From: Chlorokybus atmophyticus
Taxonomy: Eukaryota > Plantae > Mesostigma and Chlorokybus algae
Direction: 5' to 3'
Length of the DNA: 64,000 bases
Assembly: GCA_009103225.1 (NCBI GenBank)
Contig: RHPI01002204.1
Span: 310,001 to 374,000 of the forward strand
Below are positions 15,330 to 48,079 of this stretch, one piece after another. The number at the start of each line of letters is the position of its first letter. The first letter of the stretch is position 1. A program made the translations under genes and the position numbers. The notes beneath the pieces were generated by a model, which saw only the letters and a list, made by a program, of their open reading frames with translations, was not told the origin of the DNA and did not search any database.

Positions 15330-15352
15330 CTGGAGAGGCTCCTGCTGAGGTG
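15308..15352 (+). promoter_or_regulatory. -1 programmed ribosomal frameshift signal
   Basis: Slippery heptamer G GGA AAC (15308-15314) is in the gag frame. It is followed by an 11-bp stem, CACCTCAGTAG (15319-15329) / CTGCTGAGGTG (15342-15352). pol is in the -1 frame. Confidence 0.85.
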
Positions 15353-18300: not shown

Positions 18301-19036
18301 CCGCCAAGACAATTGGGGAGACATGCTGGAGCTGATTGAGTTCACCATTAACAACCACAAGAGTGCAAGCACGGGCGTGACACCTTTCCTTATGAACTAT
18401 GGGCAACATCCATTGACGCCATTGACGGCGTGGGTGCCTAGCATGCAAAGTTCAGATGTGGAGGCCGTGGACGGCTTTCTTGAAAGGTGTGCCGACATTA
18501 CCAAGGCAGCTCGAGAGGCTCTGCTTGTGGCGCAAAACCGGCAAAAGCAATACGCCGATGCGCGTCGCAAGGATGTTGTGTTCGAGGAGGGTGACCTTGT
18601 AATGCTTTCAACCAAGCATGTGCAGCTGGTCACGGGGGTGCGCAAGCTGAGTGAGCGATGGTTTGGGCCCTTTAAAGTGATCAAGGTCATCTCGAAGGTG
18701 GCCTACAAGCTGGAGCTGCCCAATACCATGCATGTGCACCCTGTTTTTCATGTCTCGCTTCTTAAAGGTTATCGAGGGGAGCCACCAGCTCGTCCGCCTC
18801 CAGATGTGGTTCGTGAAGGTGAGGCTGAGTGGGAAGTGGAAGCAATTGTCACGGACAAGCTGATCCGAGGCGTGCGCAAGTATTTAGTGAAGTGGCGTGG
18901 CTATCCAATGCACGAGGCGACATACGAGCCCGAGGAGAGCTTTACCAATGCCAAACAGGTCTTGCAAGACTACAAGGCCAGAGGAGGCAGTCGTCAGCTT
19001 CGAGGACGAAGCTCCCCCGGGGGGGAAGGGGTGTAA
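15350..19036 (+). CDS. pol: chromovirus Pol (PR-RT-RNase H-IN-chromodomain)
   Basis: LVDCGA protease, YLDDIL RT, CDASD RNase H, HHCC plus DDE integrase, and C-terminal chromodomain WEVEAIV..YLVKWRGY..TYEPE. Confidence 0.96.
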   Translation: MVMQPHYDVECPAAGVEALLTVGGMCATATQSGMVRVPDKARQLLGVMALIREGNGPWMECKMLVDCGANSNFMSREVARRHKWLSWANAGSVALADGYAPAGGASKQSKELEMHVGMMKDRLRFCCIELNNGFDGILGLPWLWSHNPAIDWRKRVLTTPEAGGEVLMCFNASMQGACVVQERVSCVEAASNVLHARDAHDTTARQQAAPQHASSSRGGVPELVSQVSKTKMEQIWSGNNVKDAWLCMVRETPPKSDLELVGTGSESSKDPEVQRLLEEFKDVMVDGLPAGLPPTRSVDHRVELIEGVHKPPYRPVYKLSPAELEEARSQVEDLLQRGYIRHSKSPYGAPILFVRKKSGALRMCIDYRPLNNITKKNVFPLPRIDELLEQLEGAEFFSSLDLAGGYHQIRVAPEDVEKTAFNTRYGHYEWLVMSFGMTNAPATFQTLMNEVFADLIGKGVLVYLDDILVYTKSKREHVALLHEVMQRLRTHKLFAQLNKCRFLLEEVEYLGHIVSKQGIKADPSKLAAVRDWAAPKDVKGVMSFLGLAGYYRKFVKGFSHLAAPLTALLRKGVAWSWSEAATKAFSDLKEALTSAPVLLHPNMQLPFVVACDASDKAIGAVLQQDHGNGLQPVAYFSKKMSGAELNYPVHEKELLAQVLALRQWRCFLEGKRFTLETDHSPLRYLQTQPHLSRRQARWLEFFQLFDFEVKYKPGSSNKVADALSRQLNALETVVQVQPKWLDQIRALLHEDAVGEKTIEALENGTEHSGLWALKDGLLWHGDRMYIPKIAHMRVALMKEAHDVPMAGHQGLQRTLALLKQKFLWSEMHRDVKDYVALCDTCQRVKASNQRASGLLQPLPIPLTKWEQVTLDFITGLPRTREGHDAILVFVDKTSKMVQLAPCTETCTAPEAAKLFIKHVVRSHDVPKSIISDRDPRFTGNFWRALHATLGTSLKFSTAYHPETDGQTERANRVIEDMLRCYVNSRQDNWGDMLELIEFTINNHKSASTGVTPFLMNYGQHPLTPLTAWVPSMQSSDVEAVDGFLERCADITKAAREALLVAQNRQKQYADARRKDVVFEEGDLVMLSTKHVQLVTGVRKLSERWFGPFKVIKVISKVAYKLELPNTMHVHPVFHVSLLKGYRGEPPARPPPDVVREGEAEWEVEAIVTDKLIRGVRKYLVKWRGYPMHEATYEPEESFTNAKQVLQDYKARGGSRQLRGRSSPGGEGV

Positions 19037-25900: not shown

Positions 25901-26634
25901 ATTATTTCTTAAAAGCCAATCAAGCATTTCCGACAAAGTTGATGAGTTCATATGGGTTAGAGTGACTTTTGCTAGTGCTACATGCGTAACTATTGTAAGA
26001 TAGCTCTTCAATTGTGCTTGTTGGTTTTTTATTAATGTTATGGTCATTGTTATTTAACACATTTCATTAACCTTTTTCATACTTTGCTACATCAAGTAAT
26101 GATGACGGCAGCAACCGGCGGCTCATCAGGTCATCATTTTATTTATCACGGTCCAAGCCTTTGACCCTTTAACTCAAAGGGTCCAAAGGACGCTTTATCA
26201 ACATTAATGGTGTTGTACAGTCAGAAAGCCAGAGGCCTTCCCTATGGCAGATTGCAGGAAATGGTCGGTCGAGATGGATGCTCGCGTCGTATGTAGGCCA
26301 TGAGTAACGTGTGAGCATGGGTGAACTGGGGTGATCGACAGCCGTGGTCTCTGTAAGTTTATCGTTGATTGTCGGCGGTGTTGGTAAGGTGAACAGCGTA
26401 AGTTAACGACCGTTTATGAGCGATGTTGCATGAACGATCGACTGTGTGCGTTGTTGGTTGTCGTTTGCAGTTGTCGTTGCTCACGGCAAAGTATATCACT
26501 GTCGTCGATGCGGAGGCGCCGGTGTACCCTGATATCAGCTTATGCCAACGGTGGTAGTATTCGAATTTGCAAGTGCAGATGAGGCGGGGTGTTTGCAGTG
26601 TTGGCTGGGCTGTGTGTTGTGGGCGGCGGCGTCG

Positions 26635-29600
26635 ATGGCGGATGATGCTAGTCTAGCGTCGCTTTTGGAGGAGCAACGACAGAAGCTCGAGTTGATAGAG
26701 GCGGCGAGGAAGGGTCGCAATACAAGCCAGCGTGACTATGCCAGGCGTCGCCGTGAGGAAGATAAGAATTACATTCAGCAGCTGAAGGAAGAGTGTGGGC
26801 TGGTGAAATCTCGGATGAACGCAACTGGCGTGTTTTTGCATGCATTGACATGTGGGAAGACTTGGAGATGGCAAGGAGATAACCTTGTTTTGGTTCAGGT
26901 GCGTGTGGAGGGTGCTTCGTGTGTTCATGCGTGTGTATTGTGTGTATCGTGCATTGTCTCCACCTGTGACTGCGGTTTAATTTGGCAGCTGATATGGATG
27001 AGAAGTGTTTTGTGCTCGACATACTGACCCTGATGTATTGTTTGAGCAGGATACCTTGCCGACGCCTGGTGGCGCACCTCTTGGACTATGTGCGCAGGTG
27101 AGGTGCGGTTGCATGCTGCATGCTGCGTAGCACTGTAGTTGGCTGCAAAACCGTGCTCAATGGTGCATGTTGCAGGAGAATGATGGTGAATTGGCTCTGT
27201 CGTCGTCCGATGAGGAGGAAGATCAGGAGAATATCCATCAAGTACTTTCGCAGCGTAAGAAGCAGAAGCAGCATCATACGCCTCATCAGCAGCAAGTGCC
27301 ACCAGCCTCTGCACTGCACCAGACACCGCATGGCAATGTGCGCCATGATCAGAATGGCAACCGTGTCGTGTTGGGACCGGCCATGTCTCGGTTGAACACA
27401 GCGAGAGGCGTACCTAAAACGCCCAAGACACCACTTGGCACCTTGCCAGGTGGGCGCTTAGCTTAGCCTGATTTGCTTTGCTAGGCGGTACCCTGAGAGA
27501 CCATGAATTATGTGTAGTAGATGAGACGATGTTGTATACCTATTGCCTAAATGTGGATTTGAGAACTAGTTTCCACAGCTTGATGCATGTGTTGTGTGCA
27601 GACCAGGTTCGTCGTGCCAGCGTGCATGCGGATGATGCGTACAGACAGACCCGTGTGTTCAGCCAGCTGGAGGTATAGTGGGAGTGGGGGGCACGCAAAC
27701 AAGTAAACATGCTGTGTAGTTGATCCTTCAATGCACAGTCATCTTGTCAGCAGCTTGTGTTAGGTTCAATGTATTGGCGTTCGATGTAGAAAATGGGGAT
27801 GTGGTCTGTAAATTTGCCTGGCATCCATACTCAAGTCACCATGTGGAATGGCAGAGTGGTATGAACAGGTGTCATTATAGTCTACATCACTATGTATGTA
27901 AGCACTTTTTCAACAGTAGTCGGCAGATTGCGAAATAGGGGACTACATCCATATGATAATATATGCTCTGGGCGCCCAACCACTGTGTCTATGCAGTCAG
28001 CGACTTTACAAGTTCAGAGCTTGAGGGCGGAGATGGCTTCAGACAAGCAGGGGAGAGATCGTGCGCAACGCGACTTGGATGCGGCGCTGGTGAGGCTGCG
28101 TGTCATGGAATCAAGCGGCAGCTCCAACACCAACACTGCCTTGCAGAATGCCTTGCAGGAGGTGCTGCAGTTGCGCACACAATGCGAGGTTGGTGTTGCC
28201 TAATCCTTGTATGATGTATGTGGTGTATATTTGGGTTTGACTTACCTCTGGCTTGCATGGTGTAGGACTTGCGAGATCAGCTCACACAGAATGTATGTCA
28301 AGATGACCAACGCCGCGCAGAGTCTGCACGGCCTGTTGGGGAACTGGAAGAGGAGTTGGATGCAATGACCCTGCATGCTGAGGTGAGTGGGTGCACAACC
28401 TTGCATGCAATATTATAATGACTATCAGAGGCCTCCATGTCCTGAAGTCGAACATATCACCAGGTGTTGGAGACCAGGGTGGGCGAGGAAGCGGACGCTT
28501 ATAACGCTGAGAGGAGACACTGGCTGCAGGTGGAGTGCAATCTGTCAGGATATCGTGGCAAGTTAGTGGAGCTGGAGGACGTGATCGCTGGTCTACGTGA
28601 GACTGTGCGCACAAACAGGGCGTGCCATCCATCGCAGCACGATGCACGTGTGGCGGACGAGGTGCGCCAGCTCTATGAGGACGATGTGCAGCGAGCAGCC
28701 AATGAGGACTGTCACGAACCTTTGGCATGTGCGGTGAGAGATATTGCTTCCCAATTGCTGCAGAGGGATGCCGTTGTATTCCTGACTGCAGTAGCAGTCA
28801 AGTACAATATTACACCTGCGCGTGTACTGCTGCGTGCTGTGAACCAGCGCTTACCGGGAGCGGGTGTGGTAGTGACCGGCGCCAGGCAACAGGCGCCGGT
28901 CCTTTGGTATGCCTGTTGCGCCATGGGATGAGGGTTATTGAGGTGCCGGCCAGCACACAGCCAACTCGTACGGGTACCAGCGCGGTTGATGGCGACCAAC
29001 TGCCTGCTGCTGTACTTCGTCACCTGAACAGGGTTATGGAGGCGGAGAGGCAACGGCATGTCGAGCGCAACAGACAGGACCCTGATCTGCGCTGCGTGAA
29101 TTGGCAAGAGGAGTGGGAGAAATAATGAAATGAAATGAAATGAAATGCGGACCTGTAGTGCGACAGTTGTTTGGCACACTGACTGGCTACAGTCAGATGG
29201 AGCGATTGCCATCTTCTGGTCCTAAACGGGCTCGTGCTTTAACAATCCTGCGCAATAAGACTGTGTTCCTGATGCACTGTGCATTGTATGCAAGGAGCAA
29301 GTTTGCATACTCTCCATTGCATCTGGCGGTCACGGACGAGGTGGACACACATTCTGAAGGGAACAAGTTAATCAGGACCCTCAACCGCCTGGGTGTGACA
29401 GTAAGCCGAAGCCACATCGATCGACACATACACACCAGGGCGCTTCACAATCTGAACAGCATCGCTCGATTGCAGCCCCGACCTGGTATACACATGCTGG
29501 CATCGATTGATAATCTAGACGTAAAGGCAGGCCACCAGGCACGCTACAAAGGCAGGAAAGCAGGAGACATCCATGCCACTTCAACTCAGCTTACCTCGAC

Positions 29601-32600
29601 AGCCGCTCGGATGCCTCCAGAACAACTGACTCTGCAGGTGAGTTGTCAGCCCATGGTGATCAGGGAGACCAATTACTGCGAGTACAGGTCAGTCAGACCC
29701 GCATCTTGTGGGCAATGCATGTACTCATTGTTGGTGTTGTTACAGCCATTGAGGAATCGCACGCTGGCAGAGTCACTGGTGGCTGAGCCGTGCGTCGACA
29801 ATATGCCTCCTCCTGCGCCCATGCAAAGAGCACCAGTTGTTGTGCGGAGCGTTCCAATCTTGAACTTAATGCCTGAGGAGGTTGCGGCACTGGAGAGTTT
29901 CCAAAAAACGTTACATAATGCCGTGTTGATGCGCATGCAAGAGCCGGACCAAACAAGTCTGCCAACACTCAAGGAGGATTGGGCACGGTGGCTGCAGCTG
30001 GCCACAGGCAGAAGCACTGAAGTTGCCAACGACATTGAATACCTGCCTGTGTTGCCTTTCTGCCCTGACAATATAGAGAACCTCAAGTTTGCGCTCTTGC
30101 AACTGCGCGCCAAGGTTGGCATCACGGATTTAACAAGCAAGATCTGTGTTACTGGGGACCAGAAGACGTTTGCCCTGATGCAAGCACTAAAAAAGGCAGA
30201 GCCGGGCTACTTAGACTGGGTGGTGCCTTTCCCTGGAGATTTCCATGTCAAGATGAACATGCAGCCCGTCATTATGAAGATGGCCTGGGACGCTGGTCTC
30301 GATGCTATGTCCTTGGAAGCCAGTTTTTCTGCAGCCACGGCACGCAATTATTTAGCAGACGGCTCTCATTGGAAGAAGATACACAATTTTCTGTGTAAAG
30401 TCTTGGAGGCACTGTACAGACATATGTTCAAGTTGTGGCAGCAAGCAGAAACCGCAGAAATCAAGAACTTGTGCAGAGCTGACCTGGAGGAGAACGGAAT
30501 CAATGCCTTAAAGTCTGCTTCCTTCTTTCGCGAATGGTGCGAGGGTCAGTGCAAGACCGATCATACCTAGCAGTTCTGGTGGAACTTTGTGAGCCGTGAT
30601 ATGCTGCATTACTTTGGGCTATTTTGTGGTGTTCGCCAGAAGATCTGGCATCTCCGACTGGCCAGCTGGAAGGGTCTGAGCCCGCTTCCATTCGCCTGGG
30701 ATCGCTACCATTATCAGAAAGTCATGACGCTGCATCTTGCAGACCTGCAGAGCATGCCGCGCTCTTTGCTGGATATGCTAGCCGAAGGTGGCTTTGCAGT
30801 CAGTCTAACAGGATCGGCTGGCAGACTGGTTGCTCTCGATGAAGCCCATGAGTGCCAGGTCAACAGAGATATGAAGATGTCACTGCGCAGGCCCACCACC
30901 GAGCAGCTCCGTCAGAAGTCATTGTACTCCGGGGAGCGCAGTCAAGCACACAAGCAACTAGAGCGTCAGCTACTGCTTGACACCAACCTGGTCAACAACG
31001 AGCTGGATGATGACGCCGACGACGACCACGAGAGGGTAATGCGGACACTGGCTACCGATGCCGCCAGGTGTGGCAGCGATCTAATGCATCTTGCTGAGCT
31101 GCTGGAGAATACACAAGCCTTGACAAGGCCACACGCGCTGCACTTGACGCATCTTACCACCGGGGTACCAGCGGCGGCTGCTGCTTCAGCAGATCTTGCG
31201 CGACACTACCAGGTTGGTGTTGAGGCCATGAAGTCCTTTGTGGAGGTTGACGTCTGCCGCGAGGCACCTGCGTGCAAAGTCAGTCGCAGATTCAACTTGA
31301 AAACAATGGCACCTGCTAAGAAGCGCATGAGCAAACAGGCCACCGTGATCAAGCAGTACCGTCAAGAGATGTTGGTGGCCAAGCGCCTGGCTGCCAATGG
31401 TGCTAGTCAGGAGACCGTCACAGCAAGATACTGCGAGCATCCATGGGCGCTGTTTGAGGAGCTCCAGGCAAGATGCGGTCTGGCGACAAGGCCAAGTTTA
31501 TGGCGGAGGTAGCTCCTCTCGACAACACATGCTGGAGCCGCATGTCCCCGCAGGGCGTGGAGTGCATCATCCTGGAAGGCATGTTCCTGATTAATCAAGA
31601 ATGCCACATGCTGCAAGGCACCATCAAAAACTATATCCAATGCTTGATGCGCACCTGCGTGCTCAGCCGGCTCGCTAATTAGACCGTGCGCAGCGTGCAA
31701 GTTGTGTTTGACACTCCACGACTTTAAACGGGGGTCAAGTCTTCACTGCAACGCGCACGTGACGGTGCGGCGCAATCCTCTGGTGGTCGTCTAACTCTGG
31801 ACACTGAGCTGCCGAGATTGTGGCGGGATGTGCTAAGAGATCGTAGCTTGAAGCGATCTCTGTGTGAACTGATAACAGAGGACATGCCCAACATGATTGC
31901 GGAGTACCTGCACCCCGACCAAGAGGTTGTATTCGCTGGCGGGTCCGATATAGACGAAGTTGGAGACCTTGCGCGTGTCGTGGCACGCGCTTCGGACAGC
32001 CCTGCACGCGTATATTTTGTGAACGACTATGTTTGTAACCATGGAGAAGCTGACTCTCGCGTCTGGGTGCATGCGCACAAATGCCCCTACAACAACATCC
32101 TCGTATACTCACCGGATACCGATGTGACCATGATTGGCCTGGCGATCACCGACGGGTGGGATGCAGTGTTGAAGGACGTCACAGTACAAGTGGCACAGCA
32201 CTCCAGTGGCTCCACTCGACCACCCTTCCTGCACTTGTCTACACTGCAATAACAAGTCAACAGCATGCACCAGGTGCAGAGCATCGCCACCGGGTTGCGT
32301 GGCTGGTGGCTTCTTCTGGTGTATGCAGCAACTGGTTGCGACTACACCTCATTTATTGGCGGCATCTCGAAACAGTTCATCTGGCGCACGGTCCTGGCAC
32401 AGCATGCAACATTCATCACCGGCAATGTTAGTGAAGTGGAACATGAGATGTGTTTCGCTATACTGCGCCTCATTGGGTGCTCTTACTTCGAGAAGTACAG
32501 GTCCAGCTTCGACAGCGGCACTCCTGCATCTCTGTACTTCGAGTTGCACGGGCCTGAATCAACCACCAGCGATAAGGGATGATTGGCAGACTGGTTAGAG

Positions 32601-33137
32601 GCAATCCACAAAACAGTGTGGAAGAAGATTGCCACGCCACGAGATACCATGCCCACAGTCGATGCACTATGGCTGCATGCACTTCGCTCGGTGTATGCAG
32701 TGCAGATGTGGATGCAGAGCTGCAATGGTGACATGCACATGCCTGACTTGTCTGATTATGGTTTCACTGAGGTCAATGGGTTATGGACTGCTGTCCAAGA
32801 TCTGCCAGAACACATGGTGGAGGCGAAAGCTAGGAGGCAATTGCTGATGAAGGGTTGTGGATGCAAGACTGGACGATGTATCAGCAAGAGATGCAAGTGT
32901 CGCAAGGCAGGACAAGCATGCACCGACAGCTGTTCGTGTTTGGGATGTGACAACCACGGTAATCACGTGGACGAGGGCGCTAGTGCAGCTCCTAGTTGCC
33001 ACACAACAACCCCCCCGCCCGTGGTCAACCCAACAGCCGAACCGTCAACACAGGCAATGGACAACGATTATCCAGATTCTGTCAACTTAGACAGTGATGA
33101 GGAAGACCTCACCATGATGGATATGGACGACGTCTAG
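26635..33137 (+). pseudogene. Academ transposase-XPG/PIN-like nuclease-Cys8 finger gene, intron-containing 5' part, disrupted
   Basis: Coiled-coil-like spliced N-terminal exons, then IDNLD, GDQKT, PFPGDFH, DEAHEC.VNR (transposase part); ILEGM, VVFD, HGEADSRVWVHA, VYSPDTDV, TGCDYTS (XPG/PIN-like, H3TH); and GCGCKTGRCISKRCKCRKAGQACTDSCSCLGCDN (Cys8). In-frame stops at ~30568, 31680, 32250 and 32580, plus frameshifts at ~29125, 31470 and 31725. Confidence 0.85.
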
Positions 33138-33569
33138 GGCGGCCTGCTACTCTCGCAGAAGGCGCCGCGAGCAGTAAGTTCTACCATAGCCACGCCCCAC
33201 TGCACCTCACCCAACCCGCTCAACCTCAGGCAACCCAATCTACTGCACCTGTCAACGCCGCCGCCACCGGCAGCATCCTCATCCGCAACCTCCTCCGCAA
33301 CCGCCGCCGCCTCCGCCGGGTGCCCAAACCGCAGACACACAACCACATCAACAGAAGGTGCCGGCACCGCCGCCGCCACCGGCAGCTTGCTCCCCCGCCT
33401 CTGCCTACACCGCCGCCCCCGCCAGCCTCGAGCAGAGATCTGTGCTGGCTGGTATGTAGCAAGCGCATGTTTTTAGGGTTTGCAACGCGTGTTTTTAGGG
33501 TAGTGCAGCTCAGCAACATGTGTGTTGCATTGCAAGGCGGCGGAGTTGGCGGAATGCAGTGGCACCAAC

Positions 33570-34025
33570 ATGGAGACGGCGGGCACGGTCAAGAAGGTCA
33601 TGGTTTGTGACGTGTGCCATTCCTACGTCGTCAACAACGGTCAGCGTTCGCGCCTTCAGAAACATCAGGCTCAGTGCAAGGCGTACCAGGAGCGCTTTGG
33701 ATACACTGCCGCATGCTGGCATCACCACGCTGCAGGTCATCACATCCTGCACTGCCGAGTGAAGCTTAGGTGTGCGCAACCAGAGTTTTTTAATATGCAG
33801 TGCGCATGCCATCAGTGCGAAAGCTCTCTGTTTGAATGGCACGGCCTACCCATGCGATACATGCCTTACGTCCGCCCCACCACCATGATCGAAGGGATGC
33901 AATGCCGCCTGCTGGCGGTGAGTGGCACAGATGGCACTGATGATACTGCACGCATTTGTGCCAACACTAATACTGTATATACAACTTGTGCGCCAGGGCC
34001 AGCGCGTGCGCTGCGGACGCGGTGA
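33570..34025 (+). CDS. Cys/His-rich ORF, possible Zn-finger; possibly the 5' exon(s) of the Tudor-methyltransferase gene
   Basis: METAG..CDVC..HQAQC..CWHHH..CACHQC, preceded by a GC-rich tract and two TTTTAGGG motifs (33471, 33493). The link to the downstream exon is not resolved. Confidence 0.4.
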   Translation: METAGTVKKVMVCDVCHSYVVNNGQRSRLQKHQAQCKAYQERFGYTAACWHHHAAGHHILHCRVKLRCAQPEFFNMQCACHQCESSLFEWHGLPMRYMPYVRPTTMIEGMQCRLLAVSGTDGTDDTARICANTNTVYTTCAPGPARALRTR

Positions 34026-34143
34026 CGCGCAGACCGTTGTCATGCTGCCAGAGATAACCGCTGTTGCATCAGATTTCCTCGAGGTTGGTGTTTCAATGTG
34101 AACGTGCATCACACCTAGTGCATTACACAACAGCATTGTAATT

Positions 34144-35332
34144 GTGGACAACCAGACTGAACGAGAAGGAACCGATGCCGCCAGCGTGCTGCGCCAGCGT
34201 TGCGCGCGCGGGGGTGATGCATTGGAGGGCCTCGATGTACTGGTGTACTGGCCGATGGACGAGACTTGGTATACCGGAGTCGTCTACATTTACAACCCAC
34301 GCAATGGTGAGTTATGCACTGTCAAGAGCATTCACACGCGACACCGGCCATGGACTCAACGTAGCGCACTGCAATTGCAGGGCGCCACAGTGTGCGCTTT
34401 GTCGACGGCGACAAGCAGCATATGAAGATCAACGAGCACAACATGGTGGTTGTGTTCTGGCACCAAGGAGCTCAGTGTTGCCACCGCGTTGGTGGTCAGC
34501 GCGTACCCACTCACCGCAAGATCCCTCCGCCTCTGCCGTGTCTCCCGCTGTGGTCGTCATCAGCGCCATTGCTGATGACACACACTCCTGTCAGAATGGA
34601 GGGCACACCGCACCGTCCCAAGGTCCTTGACCTGTGCTGCGGCGGGGGAGGTGCTGGGATGGGGTTGTACCGAGCAGGGTTCGACGTTACCGGCGTTGAC
34701 ATCAATCCACAGCCCGAGTACCCGTTCCCCTTCATACAAGCTAATGCCCTGGTAGTCGACCTGGCGCCATAAAACTGATTTGGGCTAGCCCCCCTTGCCA
34801 GGCATATGCCCGATGCATACCAGATTCACAACGTCACCAGCATTCCACACGATGGAAGCACAGCACACTGCTGCCATCGCTGCGATTGCGCCTTCATGAG
34901 TCAGGAAAGAACTACATCCTGGAGAACATACCAGATGCTGCATGTCACATGCAGCACAACATGGTGCTGTGCGGCACCATGTTTGGACTGCCAATCTTCC
35001 GGCACAGGCTTTTTGAGACACATCCCAAGGTGGTAGCCGACCTGGTGTGCGACCATACGTCCAAGAGTCTACGTCCACTGTCGGGTCATGTGTCCAGCAC
35101 TGCCAGCCGCACACTGACCAGCACTACCCAGCAGATGTACCCCGTGTATGGCTCCGCTGCATCGCGCGGTACCATATCCGGCTGGCAGCAAGCATTAGGC
35201 ATTGACTGGATTGATGCTAATGCCACACTCGTCGAATGCATTCCGCCTGCATACTCTGAGTATATTGGGCGGTGCATGTTGCAGGCAATGGGATACACAT
35301 TGAACAGCGGCCCCATATCATGGGGCCGCTGA
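34144..35332 (+). pseudogene. Tudor domain fused to phage-type C5 cytosine DNA methyltransferase (single -1 frameshift at ~34770)
   Basis: Removing the GT-AG intron 34307-34380 gives [34 protein letters not shown] (Tudor) in frame with [38 protein letters not shown]. After a 1-nt deletion it continues LIWASPPCQAY..YILENIP..LCGTMFGLPIFRHRLFE..ALGIDW..ECIPPAYSEYIG. Confidence 0.88.
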
Positions 35333-35783
35333 GTATCAATCCGCATGCCTATTTGTGTTAGTTTACAAGTCAATTTGTACACTGGTGCACATTGATTCTC
35401 AATGCACATTTCCTGGTCAATATATGGTTGCAACCTTGTATGACCACAACTTTGCATTCGCGCTCACACATCAACGTCAGTTTTCCACTGCCGCTCACAC
35501 ACAGCACCAGACATCCTATCTCCATGTGTGGTTATCCATGTTGCAGGCAATGGGATACACATTGAACAGCGGCCCCATGATATGGGGCCGCTGAGTATCA
35601 ATCCGCATGCCTATTCGTGTTAGTTTACAAGTCAATTTGTACACTGGTGCACATTGATTCTCAATGCACATTTCCTTGTCAATATATGGTTGCAACCTTG
35701 CATGACCACAACTTTGCATTCGCGCTCACACATCAACGTCAGTTTTCCACTGCCGCTCACATATAGCACCAGACATCCTATCT
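35275..35783 (+). repeat. 247-bp near-identical tandem duplication (35275-35521 and 35537-35783)
   Basis: Duplicates the last codons and the 3' region of the methyltransferase gene. Confidence 0.9.
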
Positions 35784-35924
35784 GCACGCCCATGCCGGTC
35801 TAACTACACAACGTCACCGTCCAGTTGATGCGGAATAGGGGACATGCATACACTGCGCGCAGTCACCTAGCGAGCAGACACACACGTTATGTACAAGTAG
35901 CTTGTTGCGTACAGTGCACACTGC

Positions 35925-37095
35925 CTAAGACACCACAGCTGCACTGGCATCCTCACTGCCCTCCTCGCTGGTGTCACACCCTGCCTGCGATGGAGTCTCT
36001 TTGTCGTATGCACCAAACCATTGAGCGCCGTACTCGGACTGGTCAGAGTCAGTGTCGTTGTCCATGTCTCTGAACACCTGGGTGAGGTCGTCGTGAGCAA
36101 GCATCCATTCCACAGGCGTGAATACATGTGACCCAGGCACACAATACCATGATCAACATCACCCATTTAGAAGCGTCTGCCTGTTATATACCCTACCTGT
36201 CAAGCACCCTGATCCATATGCCAAGCAGAGTGAATCACCACTGTAGCCGCAGCTTGCACATCGCAAGCGACTCGCAACCCAGGCCACACACGAGACAGAT
36301 CTCAACCCAGCTGGTCGGCAATCCAGTGCATATGCATACATCGATGAGGGGCAGAATACAACTGAGTCTCGTGACACAACACACACCCAATCAATATATA
36401 CACCCACCACATTGATTACAGTTGCAACACACATACGTGCGCACATACCAGGGTTTGCAGGCACGACAGGATCCTAACCTCCACCGACAACTGCAGGGGG
36501 CGGGTGGGGCAAGCCAGGATTATCTGATTGGGCATCGTTGCCACCCTACAATGGATGCATGCTCCACTGACCGATCTCAAACGGGCTCCAATCAGTGTCA
36601 TGCCACTGCTCAAGCCAATGCCGTCGCCTTCCAGGTTCCACATCACAATCAGTGGCGATCACCCAACGTGCCAGCACCACTCCACCCACCACATGCTCCA
36701 ACACCAGCAGATCACTACTCAAACGCATTGGCCTGCCGCCTGCTCGTCGAACCCTATGCAAGCTGTACCTAAACCCAAACCCACCCAAAAGCTCCACGTG
36801 CAGCTCCTTGACACCATCGCCAGACTGCACCCCAAACCCAGCAACCTGCAACGGTCAGCCTAGCGAAACCTACACAAGACCGGGGGACAATATCACATGC
36901 CACGCATCCGCCTATACAGAGACCAAAGCAACACGAAGCTGCACAACGACAAATCATGCACATTACTTAACGCTGACTCACCTGCTCGTATGCAGACTGG
37001 TAGAATGTGCTACTCCGATGTATGTGAGGGAGTGCCCTGCTGTCAGCAATAGTAACTGCCAAGGGGTTGTCGCCGCCCCCGCCGTCGACATCCAT
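35925..37095 (-). pseudogene. unidentified spliced gene remnant inside the Academ element
   Basis: MDVDGGGGDNP..YQSAYEQ|gtgag, then Trp-rich coding-like blocks (LLVLEHVVGGVVLARWVIATD..HWLEQWHDTDWSPFEIGQW; MHWIADQLG..VWPGLRVACDVQ; FTPVEWMLAHDDL) with stops. No family recognised. Confidence 0.4.
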
Positions 37096-38565
37096 CACAC
37101 CCACCCACCCAACGCAATCGCCGACCCCCGCCGCCCACCAGCACCACCCGCCAAGCAATGCCCCCATTCACGACCGATATATCAACGCCAAACAGAAGTC
37201 AGCGCGCTGATATCCACCGGACGGCGGCAACATTCACATCCGACCAACAGCGTCAACCGCCGTTTACTTAACAGAACCACACGCACCTTCCACCATGCAA
37301 CAGCGTTAAACATCGCATGAACATGCGTGGACAACAGCGTTGTGTCGACCACTCAACACCCTCAGCCGACGCTAGTCGATCAGCGCAGACACTAGACAAT
37401 GCACCATTGATCACCCGATCAACTACAACCAGGTCAGCGGTGTCAATAAACGTTGCAACACCGCCATCCCACGCGTTTCAGCAGACCAACACCAACAGCA
37501 GCCGCGCGCACAGCGCTGCCAGGCCTGGCCTAAGCTTTGCCCGGCGAGAGGCCTCTGGCTTTCTGACTGTGTATCCGGGCGCGTCTACGAAGTACTTAAA
37601 ACGTCATCATGTTTACGCGGCCTCAGCTCCCCTCAACGGACGGTCGTTCTTCCCACTGTCCAGCATGCTTTCCCCATTGATAGGTGAACGGACAGAGGTG
37701 ACACTGTGAGAGACGTGCAAACGGTCGGTATCTGGCTTTGCGGGTTCTCATGTAGGCGGCGACGGCGGCGGCGGCGGTGCTGGTGGCGGCGAGGCAAGGG
37801 TGAGCGAGGTTTACGGCGTATCCTAAGCTGCTTCAGCTCGTGGTCGTGAGGTCGGCGATGGCGGAGGGTCAGCATGCGCCGGTGTGGCCTGGGGCTGAGC
37901 CTGGCAGGTGAAGCCGGCGGCCGGGTTGAGAGAAGGGGCGCTTTTGCAACGGTACGAACAAATAGCTGTATATCACGCACTGTTACCATTGCATCGTCGC
38001 TGCCTAGCCATATGCTCCGTGCACCGGCTTTTAACCTCTGCCTTGGTCGCTTTCCTGGTGGCATAAAGTCAGAGCGTTTCTTGCATTTATGAGAGGGATG
38101 GTCATTTGGAGTGTTTGTATGTGTTGTATAACATGGTGCATCATTGCCTGCTAGCCTGCAGAAACCGCTGTGGTCAGCCTGTCAAGCCTGTTGCAAGCTG
38201 CATGACGCTCCTACATCTTTTCCTTTGTGCACGAGCCTGTTACCCTAAGTGCACAACGTTGAGCTCAGCGATGACGTGACTGCGTTGAAAGTTGGCTACA
38301 TACTAAAACGCGCTCACCCTGCATTATGATGTCACTGGAACACAGCAGGTCATACGCGGCAGTGAGTGAGGTGGGTATGTTTCGGCGTCACTCACCAGCA
38401 CTGAAAAGGTATCACAAATCCGTGTGCATCAGTCTTACTGCTTTATATTGTTCTTATTGCATGTCACAGCTTGCGTCTGCACAGAAACAGCCGATGTGCA
38501 ACGAGTGCTGTAAGTCATGCTGAACATTGCAGGTTGAGTAGGCGGGCAGTGGCCCGTAAGTGATC

Positions 38566-40796
38566 ATGCCGGCTGCCAAAGCAGCAAAGGCAAGTGTGGA
38601 CAACATTGTTACAGTCAGCAAGCGAAGGCTCACTGTTTTGGACGCATGGATCCCGAAAGTTTTCAAGTGGCAAGCCGAGTTGCAAGAATTGCTGGAGTGG
38701 TTAGACAATAAGGCAAAAGAGTGCAAAACAGCCCTCAAGGTGCGTTGCTCTTGCATACCCATGTGGGTGCTAAGTATGCCAACAATGTTGTCCTGTTGTA
38801 GTAAGGACTGGTGCGGTTTGCTTGTAACGGTGCTCAGCCCTTGATTGCATGTACGTAGAATGTGCAGGTTGCTGCGGAGCCTCCTCAGGCAGGCTTGAGG
38901 CATGCAAGAACATGGAGGCTTGAGGCATGCAAGGACATGGAGCATGAAAACAAAGAGAACATCTCTGCTGCAGTCCCAGCAGTCAAAGACAGCATCAACC
39001 CCTTGGAGGACTGTTGTCCCCAGCAACCTCCGATCTTGTATGCGGATGCTGAGCAGCCGCAAACCAGCACCCCGCCAGCACCACCAAGGAGCGCATTTGC
39101 AGTTCAAGAAGTCACGGCAGTCACGCCGATGATGACCGCTGCCCTCGCGGCACCTACACCGGTGACAGAACCGCGGCGAGCACCGCGCGTAGCTGACAGT
39201 ATTCCAGCTGCCATGGCACATTCGGCAGCTAAGGACTCACCAGGCTCTGCTGTGGCTGTAGCGGAGACGCCTGCAACAGCAGAGAAACCCGTGCCCAAGG
39301 CTGCTGCACAGTCGCCACCTTCCTTGCCCAGACGCTCTCCTCGGCTAGCATCCACCCAGAAGACACCGGAAGTGGAACAGGTAAGCATGCAGGAGGCAGG
39401 GTCATGAGTGTTCTACTTGTACATAATGTAACCAGTGCAACCCCTGCAGGTTGCTGATGCTAAGATGGTGACGGATGACAGCGATGCACGTGCCAAGGCA
39501 TCACCAGCACTATCAGGTCCTGAGCTTCAATCTGCTAAGGCTGCAGAACCGGCAAAGCCTCCACAGCAAATGAACAACCTCGTGTCCTTGGTGAAGTCGT
39601 TTTTGCCTTGCGTCATCTGCGCGCCAGCTGCGGAGCCTCTGGCTAACAATAAAAAGAACATCAAGGTACATGCGCAAACAGCGCAAATGCTGCAGCAGAA
39701 CATGCATAGCCTGCCTGGATGTGGGAGGGAGAATTTTGGCTTGAGTAGTCAGCGCTGCTTGCAAACAATAATGCTGTCGTGTAACAGGTGAAAGCATTGG
39801 AGGTTGCAAAGGCAGCAAGGCTTGAAGAACAGCAGCGGTTAGAAGAGCGCCAGGCACGCAAAGCCCTTCTGGACAAGCAAAGGCTAGACAGGCAGCAGCA
39901 GGAGCGAGAGGAACAGCAGCGTTTGGAGCAGCGGCAGGCAAAGATAGCCTTAGCAGAGAAGCAGAAGTTACAGAAGCAGCAGTTGCTGCAGCAGCACCCG
40001 AAGCCCCAGCTCAAGACCCCGGCGAAGAAGAAGCAGATGGCGAGCAGACCTGAAGAAGGGCAGGCCAGGAAGGGAGATGCAGCCGTGAACAGTACCTCCA
40101 AACTGCCAGCTCTTGCAGTGTCCAAACAGGTTCCTGGAAGCAGCCCCAGGCCAATTAGCAAGCTGCCCATGGTGCAGGCCCAGCCAAGCTTCGCAGCTGA
40201 ACAGCCGCGCACAGAGCCTTCCAGGCCTGCGCTTGGGGCACTTCCGGTTAACACCACCTCCAAACCCAAGACACCTTTGCGACCTCAGGGCAATGCAGGT
40301 TGGCCAACATGCGGCAGTAGTCGCAGTAGTGATATTGGGTGTGTGTGTAAGCCGGTCGTTTCTTACACGGTGCACTTTGCAGCTGCTCCTGCCTCATCTC
40401 CGCACGAGCCTGAGTACGTCATCTCTCCATACAAGAGCGGCTCCGACTCTGATGACGATCACCACGAGACAAAGCCAGTGCCATCTTGGGCACGCAGCAC
40501 AGCATTATGGCCTGCACTATGCCAGCAAGTAAGTTGCCCTTTGAGTAATGGTCACAAGTTGACGGTGTCAGGCCATCATGCGACATCCTGACAAGTGCAA
40601 ACCGCTCAGGCCAAACTGGACCCAGACACCATCTTTGTGTCCAGCAAGACCTGCAGCCTTGAGGAGATCTTCCAGTACAATGGTTCAAAGAGGAAAAGAG
40701 ACTTCAACCGCAGATCCGACTCAGGCAACTGGCTGGAAGATCGGCTCACGTGGCAGGAAAGAGCTCGCGTACAAGAAAGACATGGGTTTTGCTTAG
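38566..40796 (+). CDS. INCENP: inner centromere protein (INCENP/WYRD-like), ~6 exons
   Basis: Helical N-terminus, ENKEN (KEN box), long charged single-helix region (EEQQRLEERQARK..) and C-terminal IN-box PSWAR..DPDTIF..CSLEEIF..RRSDSGNW..DRLT. One extra A at ~40758 shifts the terminal EELAYKKDMGFA*. Confidence 0.85.
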
Positions 40797-42642: not shown

Positions 42643-45600
42643 TGTAGCGACGCAATGCTTATTATCAGTGTCCTGATTAGCGCCGCATTATCAACATGCT
42701 CTTAGTCAGCCAGCGAGGCCACGCGCCTCAATAGAATGCACAGTAGATATTGCATTAGCCAATAGCATGCTTTGTTTCTCATAAGCTTGTACTAGCTACA
42801 TGCCACACTTGAGCCCTATTTAAGCGGGCCCTTTCTATTCCATTAATTCAGTCTTGCTTATTATCACCTGCTCAGTGTGGCTTGCTATATGCATGTGAGA
42901 TGCCGCCGTTATAGTGAGTGCCGACATTACATTGGTGGAGACGCGGATTGAGTGCCTTTTCACCACTCACCGCCCCTGCTTACGACAATTCAGTTATATA
43001 TTGTCACCGATTTTATTCTTTTTTCTGTTACCGGCTCCGGCATTTTATCTTTATTTTCAGTCAACGTTGACCTTCATGGCGCATAACACACGCGGCCGAG
43101 CCGCCGAAGGCAACGTGACCCCTCCTGAAGCAGACTCGGCGTCCGCCGCCATGGCGGGCGTCCTCGACCGCATTGTTGACAGGCTTGAGCACCTGTCGGC
43201 GACGAACCCTGGTACCGCCGCACAGTCCGCGGCTCAGCAGCAGGCGGGCCGCGACCGACGCGCCCGGCCTGACAAGTTTTCAGGCGATCGCACCAAGGAA
43301 GTACGACACTGGCTTGCCGAGGTCAGCCAGTACGCCGAGTACCATGGATGGGACGACGCCGCCAAGTGCCGCGAGGTCTCCCTTCTACTAACTGGTACTG
43401 CCGCTGGTTGGTTCATTAACCAACCCATTGACATCAAAACCACCTGGTCCAAGCTCCGTGATGCATTACTTTTTGCCTTTTCGGCAACACCAGCTACATC
43501 CGCCTCAGCATGGTCACATATCTTCGCCATGAAGCAACGTGAACAGGAGACGGTCACCGAGTATTTTGTGCGCTTTAATGAGACCCTGGTGTTTGCGGAT
43601 GATAATTTAACAAAAAAGACCAGAATTGGTTTGTTTTGGGCCACCGTCAAACCACATTATAGAGACAGAGCAGCAACATCTCATGCTAACACATTGGAGG
43701 AAGCTTTTGCAATAGCAAGGAGGGTAGAAGCAACAATTAATGATTTACAGCCCAGTTAGTTGCCCAAAGTGACTTTAAATGCACAGTCAGTTGCTCCAAG
43801 ACCCCATAGTCAGTTTAACCGCTCACAGCCACGCCGATTTGTTGCCAACAGTGGCGGCAACGTACGCCACTCCCACATTCGTGGCAAGTCACGTCATGAT
43901 GGCTACCAGTCACGTCAGCATGCACAGCAGCGTCCCATGCCGAAATTCAATCAACAGGGGGAACCAAGATGTTTTAATTGCAACAAATATGGTCATTATG
44001 CCAATGATTGTCGCTTGGCAGGCCGCCGCATGCAGCAGAACGCCATGCTTACTACCGGCGAGGAGAACACGCCGCTCATCACTCATTTTGACATCCAAGC
44101 AGTGACATCTGCGACAGCAGCAGCCAGAGGCGTGTGCACCGTTTTTGGCAAGTTGGAGGGCAAGCCAGTGAATGTTCTCTTTGACACCGGCTCCTCAATT
44201 TCGTCAGTGTCCTCTGCACTCGCCGCCGAGCTTGGCTTACCAGTCACGTCAGCCCCACGCATTACTGTACAGTTTGGTGATGGCCACATCACCGCCGAAT
44301 CTGCTACTGCCTGCTCTGCTACCCTCATCATTGGAGAGGCGTACACCCAACGTTGGAGGTTCCGCATCTTGCCAACACAGCTGTTTGATGTGGTCCTCGG
44401 CACTGACTGGTTGAGGGCGACAGACTGCAGTGTGTCTGCGCACTTTCTGCGGTTTCCTGACGGCACGGAGACTGCGCTGTCCCCACCAACTACTGTGTGT
44501 GCTACCACTATCGCTGCTCATGTCCCGCTCTCAACAGTGCACGTACCAATACGTGTCCGGCCTCAGTCGCTGCCAGTTCAATCTACTGGAGTGTCAGCTC
44601 TGCTGTCGGAGTATGCAGCACTGTTCGAAGCACCGGATCCTGCAAAAACCACTGACGTTGTACAACATGTCATTGATACGAGGGGGGCGAGGCCTGTTCA
44701 CATCAGACAGTACAGGCGCTCACGGCAGGAAAACACTTTGGTGGAGGACCTTGTCAAAGATATGTTGGAGGAGGGCTTTATTGTACCATCCTCAGAATGG
44801 TGCAGTCAGGTGGTCCTCGTGGACAAGCCTGACGGCGGCAAACGTTTTTGCGTTGATTACAGAGCACTGAATGACGTAACAGTAAAGGACAAGTATCCAC
44901 TGCCGAACATAGATTCCATGTTTGACAGACTGCAAGAGTACAACGTATTCTCCAAGATGGACGCTGCCTCTGGATTCTGGCAGGTCCGTATGCACGCTGA
45001 GAGCCGTGCAAAGACAGCATTTCAAACGGAATCTGGTCTATACGAATGGACTGTCATGCCTTTTGGCTTGTGCAACGCGCCAGCAACATTTCAACGTCTG
45101 ATGCACAGTATTCTACGTGACCTGCCCTTCGTACTTATCTACCTCGACGACATTCTGGTGTGTTCTCGAGATGAAGAGGAGCACGCTACTCATCTGCGGC
45201 AGGTGTTTGAGCGGCTCACCGCAGCAGGCATCGTACTGAAGGAACCTAAGTGCCTGTTCGCTGTCTCCTCTTTACGGTTCTTAGGCTTTATCGTGTCATC
45301 TGAGGGCCTGCGCGTTGACCCTGACAAGACCAACGCCATCAGTGAGTACCCTCAGCCTTATGGTGTTAAGGCTGTACGTCGATTCCTTGGCATGTGTGCG
45401 TTCTACGCACGTTTTGTTCCTGGCTTTGCTACCGTATCAGCGCCACTGCGTGCTCTCGTGTGCAAGGACGCTAGCTTTGAGTGGACAGAGAATTGTCAGA
45501 AGGCATTCGTTCAGTTGAAGACAGCACTGGCTTCGGCACCGCTGCTTCACTTCCCTGACTTCTCATCAAGCTTTGTATTGCGCACGGATGCAAGCAACTA

Positions 45601-48079
45601 TGGGCTCGGGCTTGTGTTGCTACAATACTCTTGCGCGCACGGTGCGTATGCGCCATTGTTGTTCGCATCGCGCTCGTTGACATCCGCGGAGAAGAACTAC
45701 ACCACGACGGAGCGCGAGTGTCTTGCGGTGGTGTGGGCGTTCAACAAGCTTCATCCTTACCTACATGGTGCGGACGTGCAACTCGAGACCGACCATAGCG
45801 CATTGGTGCAACTCTTGCGTACGAAGCAACCTAAAGGTCGCATTGCTCGGTGGGTGCTATCCTTGCAAGCATACACCTACACTATCTCGCACCGCCCGGG
45901 TACATTGTGTGGTGATGTTGACGCGCTTTCGCGCGCACCCGTTGATGATGTTCAAGCCGCACGCGTGGTGTTAGAGATACCACCACCTCCACGCCGAACA
46001 CGCAGCAGCATCACACGTTCAGCATCAGCAACCAGCAACAGCAGCGCACAGCGGCAGCAGACAGCATCGTATGAGGGAACTGTGCAGACTTCACGCACTG
46101 CAAGTTCTCCCCCTGTTTACTCATCCTTCATTGATGAGCCCTACCAGGACGTTCCTGCTGGTTCTTACAACCCTACTGAACCCTACGAAGACAACCTCAG
46201 CGCCAGCGACACCACCGCCGCTCCTGTGCAGCTGCCTGCACCGCTCTACAAGGCCGCCCCAAGCACTACCCCTCAGCGTATTCCAGCTGAGATTAGACAA
46301 AATACAACGTCTCCGGTGCTACAACCACGCCAGTCATCTTCTACTCTTCAAGATCTACAGGACAAGCATGCAACATTGCCTCCGCCGCCGCCGTTGCCCT
46401 CACCCTCAACGCCACAAACCACACCGCCGCCAACTTCCTGGCCCAGTCCGACTAGGCCAGCCCTGCCCAGCGTAACCGAGTTACGCGGGGCCCAGATATC
46501 GGACTCGGCGATATCTAAAGTTCGCGATATCGTGAAAGCTGACGTCGCAGGTACCGTCCCCAGTGGCACCTTGATCTCGTACTCGGTACACGGCGCGCTT
46601 AGTACAGGCGATCTGCTGTACGCGCGCGTCGCAGGATCAGAGCCGCGCCTCGTCATTCCGGCGCGTTACAAGTCCCTTTATTTAGCGGCTTGTCATGATG
46701 ACCCACTGATGGGCCATTTAGGGTTTCACAAGACACTGGAGCGCGTGCGCTCGTTGTACTTTTGGCACGGCCTCCGCGAGGACGTGCACAATTTTGTGAA
46801 ATCGTGTGACATTTGTCAGCGTCACAATGATGCCCACGGCAAGGCCGCGGGATTACTGCAGCCCATCACCGTTACAGAGCCGTTCGATTTGTTGGCCTGG
46901 GACATCACCGGTCCTCTGCCAACATCAGCATCCGGCAATCAGTACATCATCGTATGCTCAGAGTACGTAACACGCTGGACGGAGACGGCACCCATTGCGG
47001 CTGTCAATGCTGACACCGTGGCATCCTTTCTGCTTGCCATCATCAAGCGCCACGGCTGCCCTAAGAAGATCCTGTCCGACTGTGGCTCATATTTTACCGG
47101 TGATGTAATGGCGCGCGTTGCCAGTGCCCTCGGCATCGCACAAACCTTCACCTCACCGTACCACCCTCAAACGGACGGCCTGGTGGAGCGTATGAACAGG
47201 ACGCTCAAACGGACAATTTCCAAGTATATTAACGAGTTTCATAACAATTGGGACTCAATTCTGGGGGCTGTGACCTTTGCCTACAACACCTCTATTCACG
47301 CCTCCACCGGTCATACGCCTTTTCGCCTGTTGTATGACCGAGAAGCCCAGCTGCCGCCACAGGCCCAGTTGCCCTCATTCGGCCCAGCCATTGATGGTAC
47401 TACTTGGTACCGCCAACTCACACAGGAGTTGCCCATTTTGCGGGAGGTAGCAGCTGACAACCTACGTACGGCACAAGAACGCCAGAAGAAAAATCATGAC
47501 GCTCGCCACAAGATGGTGGAGTACAACGTGGGTGACCAGGTCCTTGTGAAGACCGTGCGCATGACTTCCAAGAAGCGCGAGTATGGCTACGATGGGGTCA
47601 TTCATCACACGGTAAAACTGAAGCCCAGATGGTCCGGTCCTTATATAGTGTTGGAACGCATCCGCCCCAACACATATAAACTTGAGAGGAGGGACTATAC
47701 ACCAGGTGCAAGGAAGACCAGTAACATCCAACATGTTTCTAACATGACGCCTTATTTCGAGCGTAGCTCTCCTTTTTAAGGAGAGGGTAATGTAGCGACG
47801 CAATGCTTATTATCAGTGTCCTGATTAGCGCCGCATTATCAACATGCTCTTAGTCAGCCAGCGAGGCCACGCGCCTCAATAGAATGCACAGTAGATATTG
47901 CATTAGCCAATAGCATGCTTTGTTTCTCATAAGCTTGTACTAGCTACATGCCACACTTGAGCCCTATTTAAGCGGGCCCTTTCTATTCCATTAATTCAGT
48001 CTTGCTTATTATCACCTGCTCAGTGTGGCTTGCTATATGCATGTGAGATGCCGCCGTTATAGTGAGTGCCGACATTACA
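42643..48079 (+). mobile_element. young full-length Ty3/Gypsy (no chromodomain)
   Basis: 289-bp LTRs (42643-42931, 47791-48079), identical by eye. 4-bp TSD CCTT. PBS TGGTGGAGACGCGG (tRNA-Ala-like). PPT AAGGAGAGGGTAA. Confidence 0.97.
43076..47779 (+). CDS. Gag-Pol in one frame with an in-frame TAG at 43757-43759
   Basis: Gag capsid, then TAG, then CFNCNKYGHYANDC, LFDTGS (PR), YLDDIL (RT), TDAS (RNase H), HDDPLMGH..CDIC and DDE integrase. No other stops. Confidence 0.93.

Follow-up and report, generated by a model that had tools for sequence, protein, structure and literature searches.

Transposons are usually on the receiving end of DNA methylation, and the locus described here raises the question of whether one of them carries a gene of its own for writing that mark. 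It lies in a stretch of 64,000 nucleotides from the alga Chlorokybus atmophyticus (GenBank assembly GCA_009103225.1, contig RHPI01002204.1, positions 310,001 to 374,000 of the forward strand), referred to here in its entirety as the window, to which all unqualified coordinates refer. Between positions 26218 and 37569, a gene for a transposase fused to a nuclease and a gene predicted to encode a Tudor domain joined to a cytosine-5 (C5) DNA methyltransferase are enclosed by a single pair of inverted repeats. We put at roughly 0.7 the probability that 26218–37569 is a single insertion of an AcademX-type cut-and-paste transposon that encloses the Tudor-C5 methyltransferase gene, that intact members of the family move both genes, and that the enzyme has a reader-writer role.

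The ends of the element could be defined precisely. The 21-mer CAGTCAGAAAGCCAGAGGCCT, which begins 5'-CA, is found at 26218–26238 on the plus strand and as its perfect complement at 37549–37569 on the minus strand, with zero mismatches between these left and right terminal inverted repeats (TIRs), and there is no third occurrence in the 64-kb window with up to 3 mismatches allowed (0.01 chance matches expected). Repeat finding gives arms of 22 bp, and the additional A/T pair belongs to the target-site duplication (TSD), the 4 bases TGTA read directly at 26214–26217 on the left and at 37570–37573 on the right. The element bounded by the TIRs and TGTA is 11,352 bp long with termini 5'-CA...TG-3', and the single TGTA duplication at both sides is as expected if all 11,352 bp were inserted in one event. 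An exact search of metagenome contigs using the TIR gave no match, and neither further copies of the element nor a paralogous empty site were found in the window. A contig from run X1 is identical to 37182–37569 and then diverges into an unrelated flank (CTGATGACC). Hence, the right boundary is at 37569 and a second insertion site exists.

Gene 1 is on the plus strand and encodes, in order, a DDE transposase core (29134–31509), an XPG/FEN-type 5' nuclease domain (31458–32579) and a Cys-rich (CXC) C-terminal domain (32580–33137) that ends at a real stop codon (33135–33137). The pieces of the core, 29134–30567 and 30571–31509, are in one frame and the remaining pieces (31458–31679, 31728–32249, 32253–32579 and 32583–33134) are in another. 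The only Pfam label on the core is DUF6589 (E 6.9e-11). An exhaustive HMMER search using the transposase recovered 457 relatives at E ≤ 0.001 (best 3e-27), in at least 17 long members of which the order of core, nuclease and Cys-rich tail is collinear with that seen here, and the few relatives with source names are from animals (Antedon, Owenia and Sycon). Three motifs conserved in the core in the family alignment, SxDNxD, GDxKT and LDEAHE, read ASIDNLD, VTGDQKTF and ALDEAHE in the window. When an AlphaFold model of the core of a homologue (predicted local distance difference test, pLDDT, 73) was compared with known folds using VIA-align, the P-element transposase was the best match (Z 9.9, 323 residues aligned), followed by Hermes (Z 9.3) and then the retroviral integrases (Z about 8), Tn5 and Mu. 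A Foldseek search with a 716-residue model of the transposase returned rows for Hermes alone and these were non-significant. Based on the motifs and the fold matches of the homologue model, the core of gene 1 is an RNase-H-fold DDE transposase.

The nuclease domain includes the motifs VVFD, GEAD, SPDTD and GCDY. Its family profile has human EXO1 as the sole match among solved structures (E 1.6e-3, in collinear stretches), and an AlphaFold model of the domain (pLDDT 89) matches XRN1/2, EXO1, FEN1 and Rad2/XPG in Foldseek. The tail contains a CXC Cys cluster (Pfam TCR, E 1.6e-6) and is collinear with the C-termini of the relatives (E down to 5e-23). No helicase was seen in the open reading frame (ORF) pieces scanned, which make up most, not all, of the element ORFs of ≥70 aa. 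Upstream of the core, 26542–29122 probably holds the N-terminal transposase exons, which are coiled-coil-like and separated by several introns. This assignment is from codon bias, using a score that distinguishes known exons from their off-frames and that is positive for the plus-strand ORF pieces 26533–27024, 27131–27463, 27865–28200 and 28446–28928; the N-terminal pieces have no Pfam match and no similarity to the N-termini of the relatives. Some of the long animal relatives have accessory domains N-terminal to the DUF6589 core, namely an OTU cysteine protease (P0010 and P0023) or NADAR (P0079), and this transposase family seems prone to acquiring accessory enzymes. The OTU and other N-terminal domains of the relatives are absent from the window copy.

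Gene 2 starts 0.4 kb 3' of gene 1, on the same strand, and is predicted to have three exons. Predicted exon 1 (33570–33917) is Cys/His-rich, forms an open frame of 116 codons from an ATG (codon-bias score 0.15) and is followed by a GTGAGT donor at 33918. The predicted intron 1 (33918–34155) ends at the AG acceptor 34154–34155. Predicted exon 2 (34156–34306) encodes the first half of the Tudor domain and ends at a further GTGAGT donor at 34307, and the predicted intron 2 (34307–34380), which is 74 nt long with GT..AG ends, lies within the Tudor domain such that splicing restores one frame through it. Predicted exon 3 (34381–35332) would complete the Tudor domain with its second half and add a linker, followed by a compact C5 DNA methyltransferase that was identified by motifs and homology. 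With these canonical splice sites, the three-exon model stays in one frame.

The first half of the Tudor domain on its own (31 aa) matches PDB 7DE9, the Tudor domain of PDS5C/RDM15, with E 2.8e-4. The Tudor stretch also matches Pfam Tudor_KDM3B at a sub-cut-off E of 0.002–0.006, and the Atlas clusters nearest to it are Tudor, Agenet and Spin, with scores of 0.85 or lower. In the methyltransferase, C5 motifs I (S-adenosylmethionine binding), IV (PCQ), VI (ENV-like), VIII and X are present in order, including IPPAYSEYIG. PF00145 was not scored when Pfam was applied to the separate methyltransferase ORF pieces; many of the 7,939 relatives recovered with the methyltransferase (best E 2.9e-43) do carry it, and these relatives are compact DNA cytosine methyltransferases of about 200–340 aa. 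There is no similarity at E < 1e-3 between this enzyme and the DNA methyltransferase (DNMT) of a retroelement found elsewhere in the window (50452–54670).

The closest relatives of the methyltransferase share 30–44 % identity with it and have a methyl-CpG-binding domain (MBD) inserted in the variable region. The contigs examined for the closest and next-nearest relatives (e.g. P0154) are mostly giant-virus-like, with densely packed intronless genes, and the markers on them include PolB and SET (L002), TopoII and kinases (L004) and a D5 primase-helicase (L006); on L001, which carries P0152, no viral marker was seen. MBD-inserted C5 methyltransferases are found at L004:8803–9858 (P0276), L006:2874–3716 (P0272) and L001:53–985 (P0152), and further MBD-inserted relatives are P0151, P0153 and P0271–P0274. 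At least two of the MBD-inserted enzymes are thus on giant-virus-like contigs (TopoII, D5 primase). Judged from its domains, a viral reader of 5-methylcytosine (5mC) lodged within a writer of 5mC looks like what may be a self-contained maintenance device, and no published description of an MBD-inserted compact C5 methyltransferase in viruses was found.

Both genes are damaged in the window copy. The transposase reading frame is interrupted by in-frame stops at 30568 (TAG), 31680 (TAG), 31725 (TAA), 32250 (TAA) and 32580 (TGA), and by a frameshift near 31455–31465, between the core and the nuclease. The methyltransferase frame is broken at 34770–34775 (with a TAA), between motifs I and IV. The copy is therefore dead, its transposase gene carrying at least five nonsense codons as well as a frameshift and its methyltransferase gene a single frameshift, and as the copy is a pseudogene-laden relic no product is made at this locus. 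Other ways of accounting for the stops were considered and rejected. They are not in introns since all five fall in gap-free columns within the stretch aligned to the relatives, several of them conserved, and a variant genetic code is excluded as TAG, TAA and TGA all occur.

The state of other copies could be assessed for 31650–37640 using contigs from runs X1 and X2, which carry different organism labels and come from separate studies; these contigs are at most 457 bp long. They cover most of this segment, including the 3' end of the transposase gene, the spacer, the methyltransferase gene and the 3' region, and most are 95–100 % identical to the window copy and of similar depth. At the last four stops (31680, 31725, 32250 and 32580) both runs have CAG, CAA, CAA and CGA, respectively, which also speaks against a variant code, and the stops are therefore C-to-T changes in the window copy. 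The stop at 30568–30570, which occupies a conserved F/Y column, is outside the stretch compared. At 34770–34775 there is a single additional base in the contigs of both X1 and X2, and with it the X1 sequence runs in one frame as ...LAPYDLIWASPPCQ, like the relatives. A missing G near 34764 had been considered as the cause of the methyltransferase frameshift and was rejected, as the X1 and X2 contigs put the change at 34771–34775. Hence, every part covered exists in one or more additional copies or alleles, in which four of the five stops are sense codons and the methyltransferase frame is open. That the methyltransferase is a constant member of this transposon family is supported only indirectly, by the near-identical contigs with the open frame found in both X1 and X2, one contig having a different right flank. 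At 20 sites a C or G of X1 corresponds to T or A in the window copy, and the reverse is seen at 9; this excess, together with the C-to-T stops, would be in line with a silenced repeat in which methylated cytosines have been deaminated. The remaining differences between the copies in coding sequence, other than at the stops, amount to 13 substitutions, 6 synonymous and 7 nonsynonymous.

Much of what had been proposed for this locus in an earlier note, made from the sequence alone, withstood this analysis. The perfect 21-bp TIRs and the TGTA duplication are present as described, the right boundary now having independent confirmation from the X1 contig. The order of transposase, XPG-like and Cys-rich segments on the plus strand is upheld by Pfam, the collinear relatives and the fold matches, and a Tudor-C5 methyltransferase gene in the same orientation, having a GT..AG intron at 34307–34380, was recovered at the level of sequence. 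A third, antisense gene, also proposed, could not be confirmed. For the minus-strand ORFs at 35.8–37.5 kb, neither Pfam nor Atlas gave a match and the codon bias is weak, and no family match was obtained for ORFs of the 3' internal region (35784–37548) on either strand. Within this region codon bias is slightly positive solely for the minus-strand ORFs 35928–36152, 36549–36854 and 36970–37167. The strand skew would suit a minus-strand gene. Most of 35784–37548 recurs in the X1 and X2 contigs with 0–4 % differences, 36050–36249 being uncovered.

Whether this is an Academ element had to be judged from descriptions of that superfamily. Academ elements are on record from animals, fungi and a single red alga, and a Cys-rich C-terminal motif after the nuclease was reportedly used by Kojima in 2020 as a defining feature of AcademX. 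In PMC10045372, which cites Kojima 2020, AcademX is the nuclease-encoding Academ lineage with a TSD of 3–4 bp. The element described here fits the AcademX type by the published definition and the earlier note's structural reading on this point was borne out, in that a DDE transposase and a nuclease are combined in a single protein, no helicase was seen, the TSD is 4 bp, within the 3–4-bp range, and TIRs are present. It differs from AcademX as described in having a second gene, that for the Tudor-C5 methyltransferase, within its ends and in its host, an alga of the green lineage. It is nevertheless conceivable that we are dealing with a different superfamily, described or not, in which the DDE transposase has a FEN-like nuclease attached by coincidence; Pfam labels the core DUF6589 only, and its fold is nearest to the P-element and hAT transposases. 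We consider this improbable as the definition of AcademX in the source cited above is precisely a nuclease-encoding lineage with 3–4-bp TSDs, and the domain order, TSD length, termini and animal relatives agree with what is reported of Academ. Less credible still, and to our minds very improbable, is that the unit is a composite artefact, with TIRs from two different elements or with the methyltransferase gene as a separate insertion or host gene lying between them. The 1.8 kb at the 3' end without recognisable function (35784–37548) would be in keeping with such an origin. However, an identical 4-bp TGTA at both sides suits a single insertion, most of 31650–37640 recurs in two runs at high identity and similar depth, and the window contains no second transposase gene or other Academ fragment. 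A nested insertion, which the earlier note had named as something that would undo its proposal, should have left its own marks, and the inverted or direct repeats around the methyltransferase gene do not exceed those expected by chance; the gene has no flanking TIR or TSD of its own, so the reading as a single element survives. Several points nonetheless weigh against that reading. The element was assigned to AcademX on description. The Tudor assignment is from half a domain, and close relatives of the fused Tudor-methyltransferase were found neither in the protein index nor among the metagenome contigs. No single contig (all ≤457 bp) joins the transposase to the methyltransferase in the second copy, such that the linkage of the two genes there, a point that the composite explanation could also draw on, was not seen directly.

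The chief rival to a role for the element is that the methyltransferase is a functionless passenger gene. The Tudor-methyltransferase would have been captured by this Academ lineage, possibly from an endogenised giant virus with the addition of a host Tudor exon, and would hitch-hike without doing anything for the element. The viral affinity of its closest relatives and the decay of the window copy both favour this, as does the near parity of synonymous and nonsynonymous changes among the 13 substitutions, which gives no clear sign of purifying selection, and orphan virus-type DNMTs in eukaryotes are often silent acquisitions (PMC12344493). Against it, gene 2 has gained predicted introns and a host-type reader domain while keeping all of the catalytic motifs, and versions with an open frame survive in other copies. 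On balance we regard a passenger as unlikely, though as the most serious of the competitors to a transposon that moves a methyltransferase with a role of its own.

The surroundings of the element are rich in transposons. Ty3/Gypsy-type pol genes are found on both sides, at 15350–19033 and 42914–47776, of which one is from a chromovirus with a chromodomain and the other has gag, protease, reverse transcriptase, RNase H and integrase, and an INCENP-like fragment is at 39788–40588. Within the element, a CCG/CCGCCA-rich low-complexity stretch (33240–33430) lies between genes 1 and 2. In runs X2 and X3 it draws unrelated contigs of high depth, and depth at this stretch is therefore uninformative on the element. 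The last methyltransferase codons and the 3' flank form a tandem duplication on the plus strand (262 bp × 1.9; 35275–35783), and in each 262-bp unit the methyltransferase stop codon is overlapped by a perfect palindrome of 27 nt (CAGCGGCCCCAT..ATGGGGCCGCTG).

How far such a combination has been seen before was examined in the literature. The retrotransposons KnitGypsy-Dnmt3, SymbioLINE-Dnmt and SymbioDIRS-Dnmt3 encode their own C5 methyltransferase, and the charophyte Klebsormidium is the source of one of them (PMC5890265). They share with the element described here the property of being mobile and encoding a C5 DNA methyltransferase (de Mendoza 2018). However, in the retrotransposons the DNMT is part of pol or ORF1 and is of the Dnmt3 or another type, whereas here the element is of the cut-and-paste kind and the methyltransferase is a separate, predicted-spliced gene of the compact phage/giant-virus type that is fused to a Tudor domain. 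No reverse transcriptase, integrase or long terminal repeat is present in 26218–37569, and this is not a DNMT-carrying retrotransposon. A parallel in mode of movement is Mariner-1_OLpv from Organic Lake phycodnavirus, a DNA transposon with a C5 methyltransferase beside the transposase (Bao and Jurka 2013, PMC3627910). It too is a cut-and-paste element with a C5 cytosine methyltransferase gene next to its transposase gene, but it resides in a giant-virus genome, belongs to Tc1/mariner, pairs its methylase with a restriction-type endonuclease and lacks a reader domain.

Other DNA transposons have enzymes or regulators that act on epigenetic marks. Those in the introduction of PMC12730594 include elements with TET/JBP dioxygenases (Plavaka and others), with SET (HarbingerS and MuDR) and with VANC (Vandal), and the cases given in that introduction do not include a DNA transposon with a C5 methyltransferase. 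The cargo of these elements erases or oxidises 5mC, methylates histones or blocks silencing, whereas the cargo here would write 5mC. Orphan virus-type eukaryotic DNMTs have been described without companion domains (PMC12344493). They resemble the enzyme of gene 2 in being compact, in their viral or bacterial ancestry, in their location in a eukaryotic genome and in falling outside the DNMT1, DNMT3 and DNMT5 families, and differ from it in that here there are a Tudor domain, a Cys/His module, predicted introns and a location in a transposon. As to the reader, PDB 7DE9 is the structure of the PDS5C(RDM15) Tudor bound to H3K4me1, histone H3 monomethylated at lysine 4 (bioRxiv 10.1101/2024.10.15.618488), and this H3K4me1-binding Tudor is the one to which the first half of the domain in gene 2 aligns. 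The plant readers PDS5C/RDM15 and MSH6 recruit cohesin, RNA-directed DNA methylation or mismatch-repair factors, whereas here the Tudor domain is fused to a DNA methyltransferase and would, by similarity, bind a like mark. Overall, the published cases of C5 methyltransferase cargo that we found are confined to retrotransposons and to one transposon of a viral genome. The earlier note's author knew of no Academ element with DNMT cargo, and our search of the literature, which did not extend to Repbase, likewise turned up neither an Academ element nor any other DNA transposon of a cellular genome described as carrying a reader-fused C5 methyltransferase.

A mechanism can be proposed for a transposon so equipped. 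In intact family members, the transposase would move the entire unit including the methyltransferase gene. The Tudor domain of the fusion protein would dock on a methyl-lysine mark, H3K4me1 judging by similarity, and the enzyme tethered there would write 5mC on the DNA at that site. The most likely benefit would be that the element controls the methylation state of itself or of the neighbourhood into which it inserts, and this might take the form either of self-dampening or of mimicry of gene-body methylation that evades the silencing-type methylation of the host. H3K4me1 is a gene-body mark in plants. In Klebsormidium, CG methylation is on active gene bodies and CHG/CHH methylation on silent transposons (PMC5890265), and one concrete possibility is therefore a signature resembling that of gene bodies. 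The fuller proposition is that intact members are active transposons with a reader-guided de novo methyltransferase, in which the Tudor domain places the virus-derived enzyme on H3K4me1-type chromatin, the enzyme writes 5mC and sets the methylation of the element or its target, and the outcome adds measurably to the host methylome. We regard this as decidedly speculative and unlikely.

The writer-carrying elements known so far are the retrotransposons of dinoflagellates and Klebsormidium and one mariner within a giant virus. The element from C. atmophyticus would extend this set in three ways, namely to a cut-and-paste element in a cellular genome, to cargo in the form of a spliced gene, and to a methylase of viral type fused with a histone reader of host type. 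If this is true, genes would have flowed from giant viruses to transposons and from there to the chromatin machinery of algae, and the product of gene 2 would represent a compact natural reader-writer enzyme whose specificity is directly testable.

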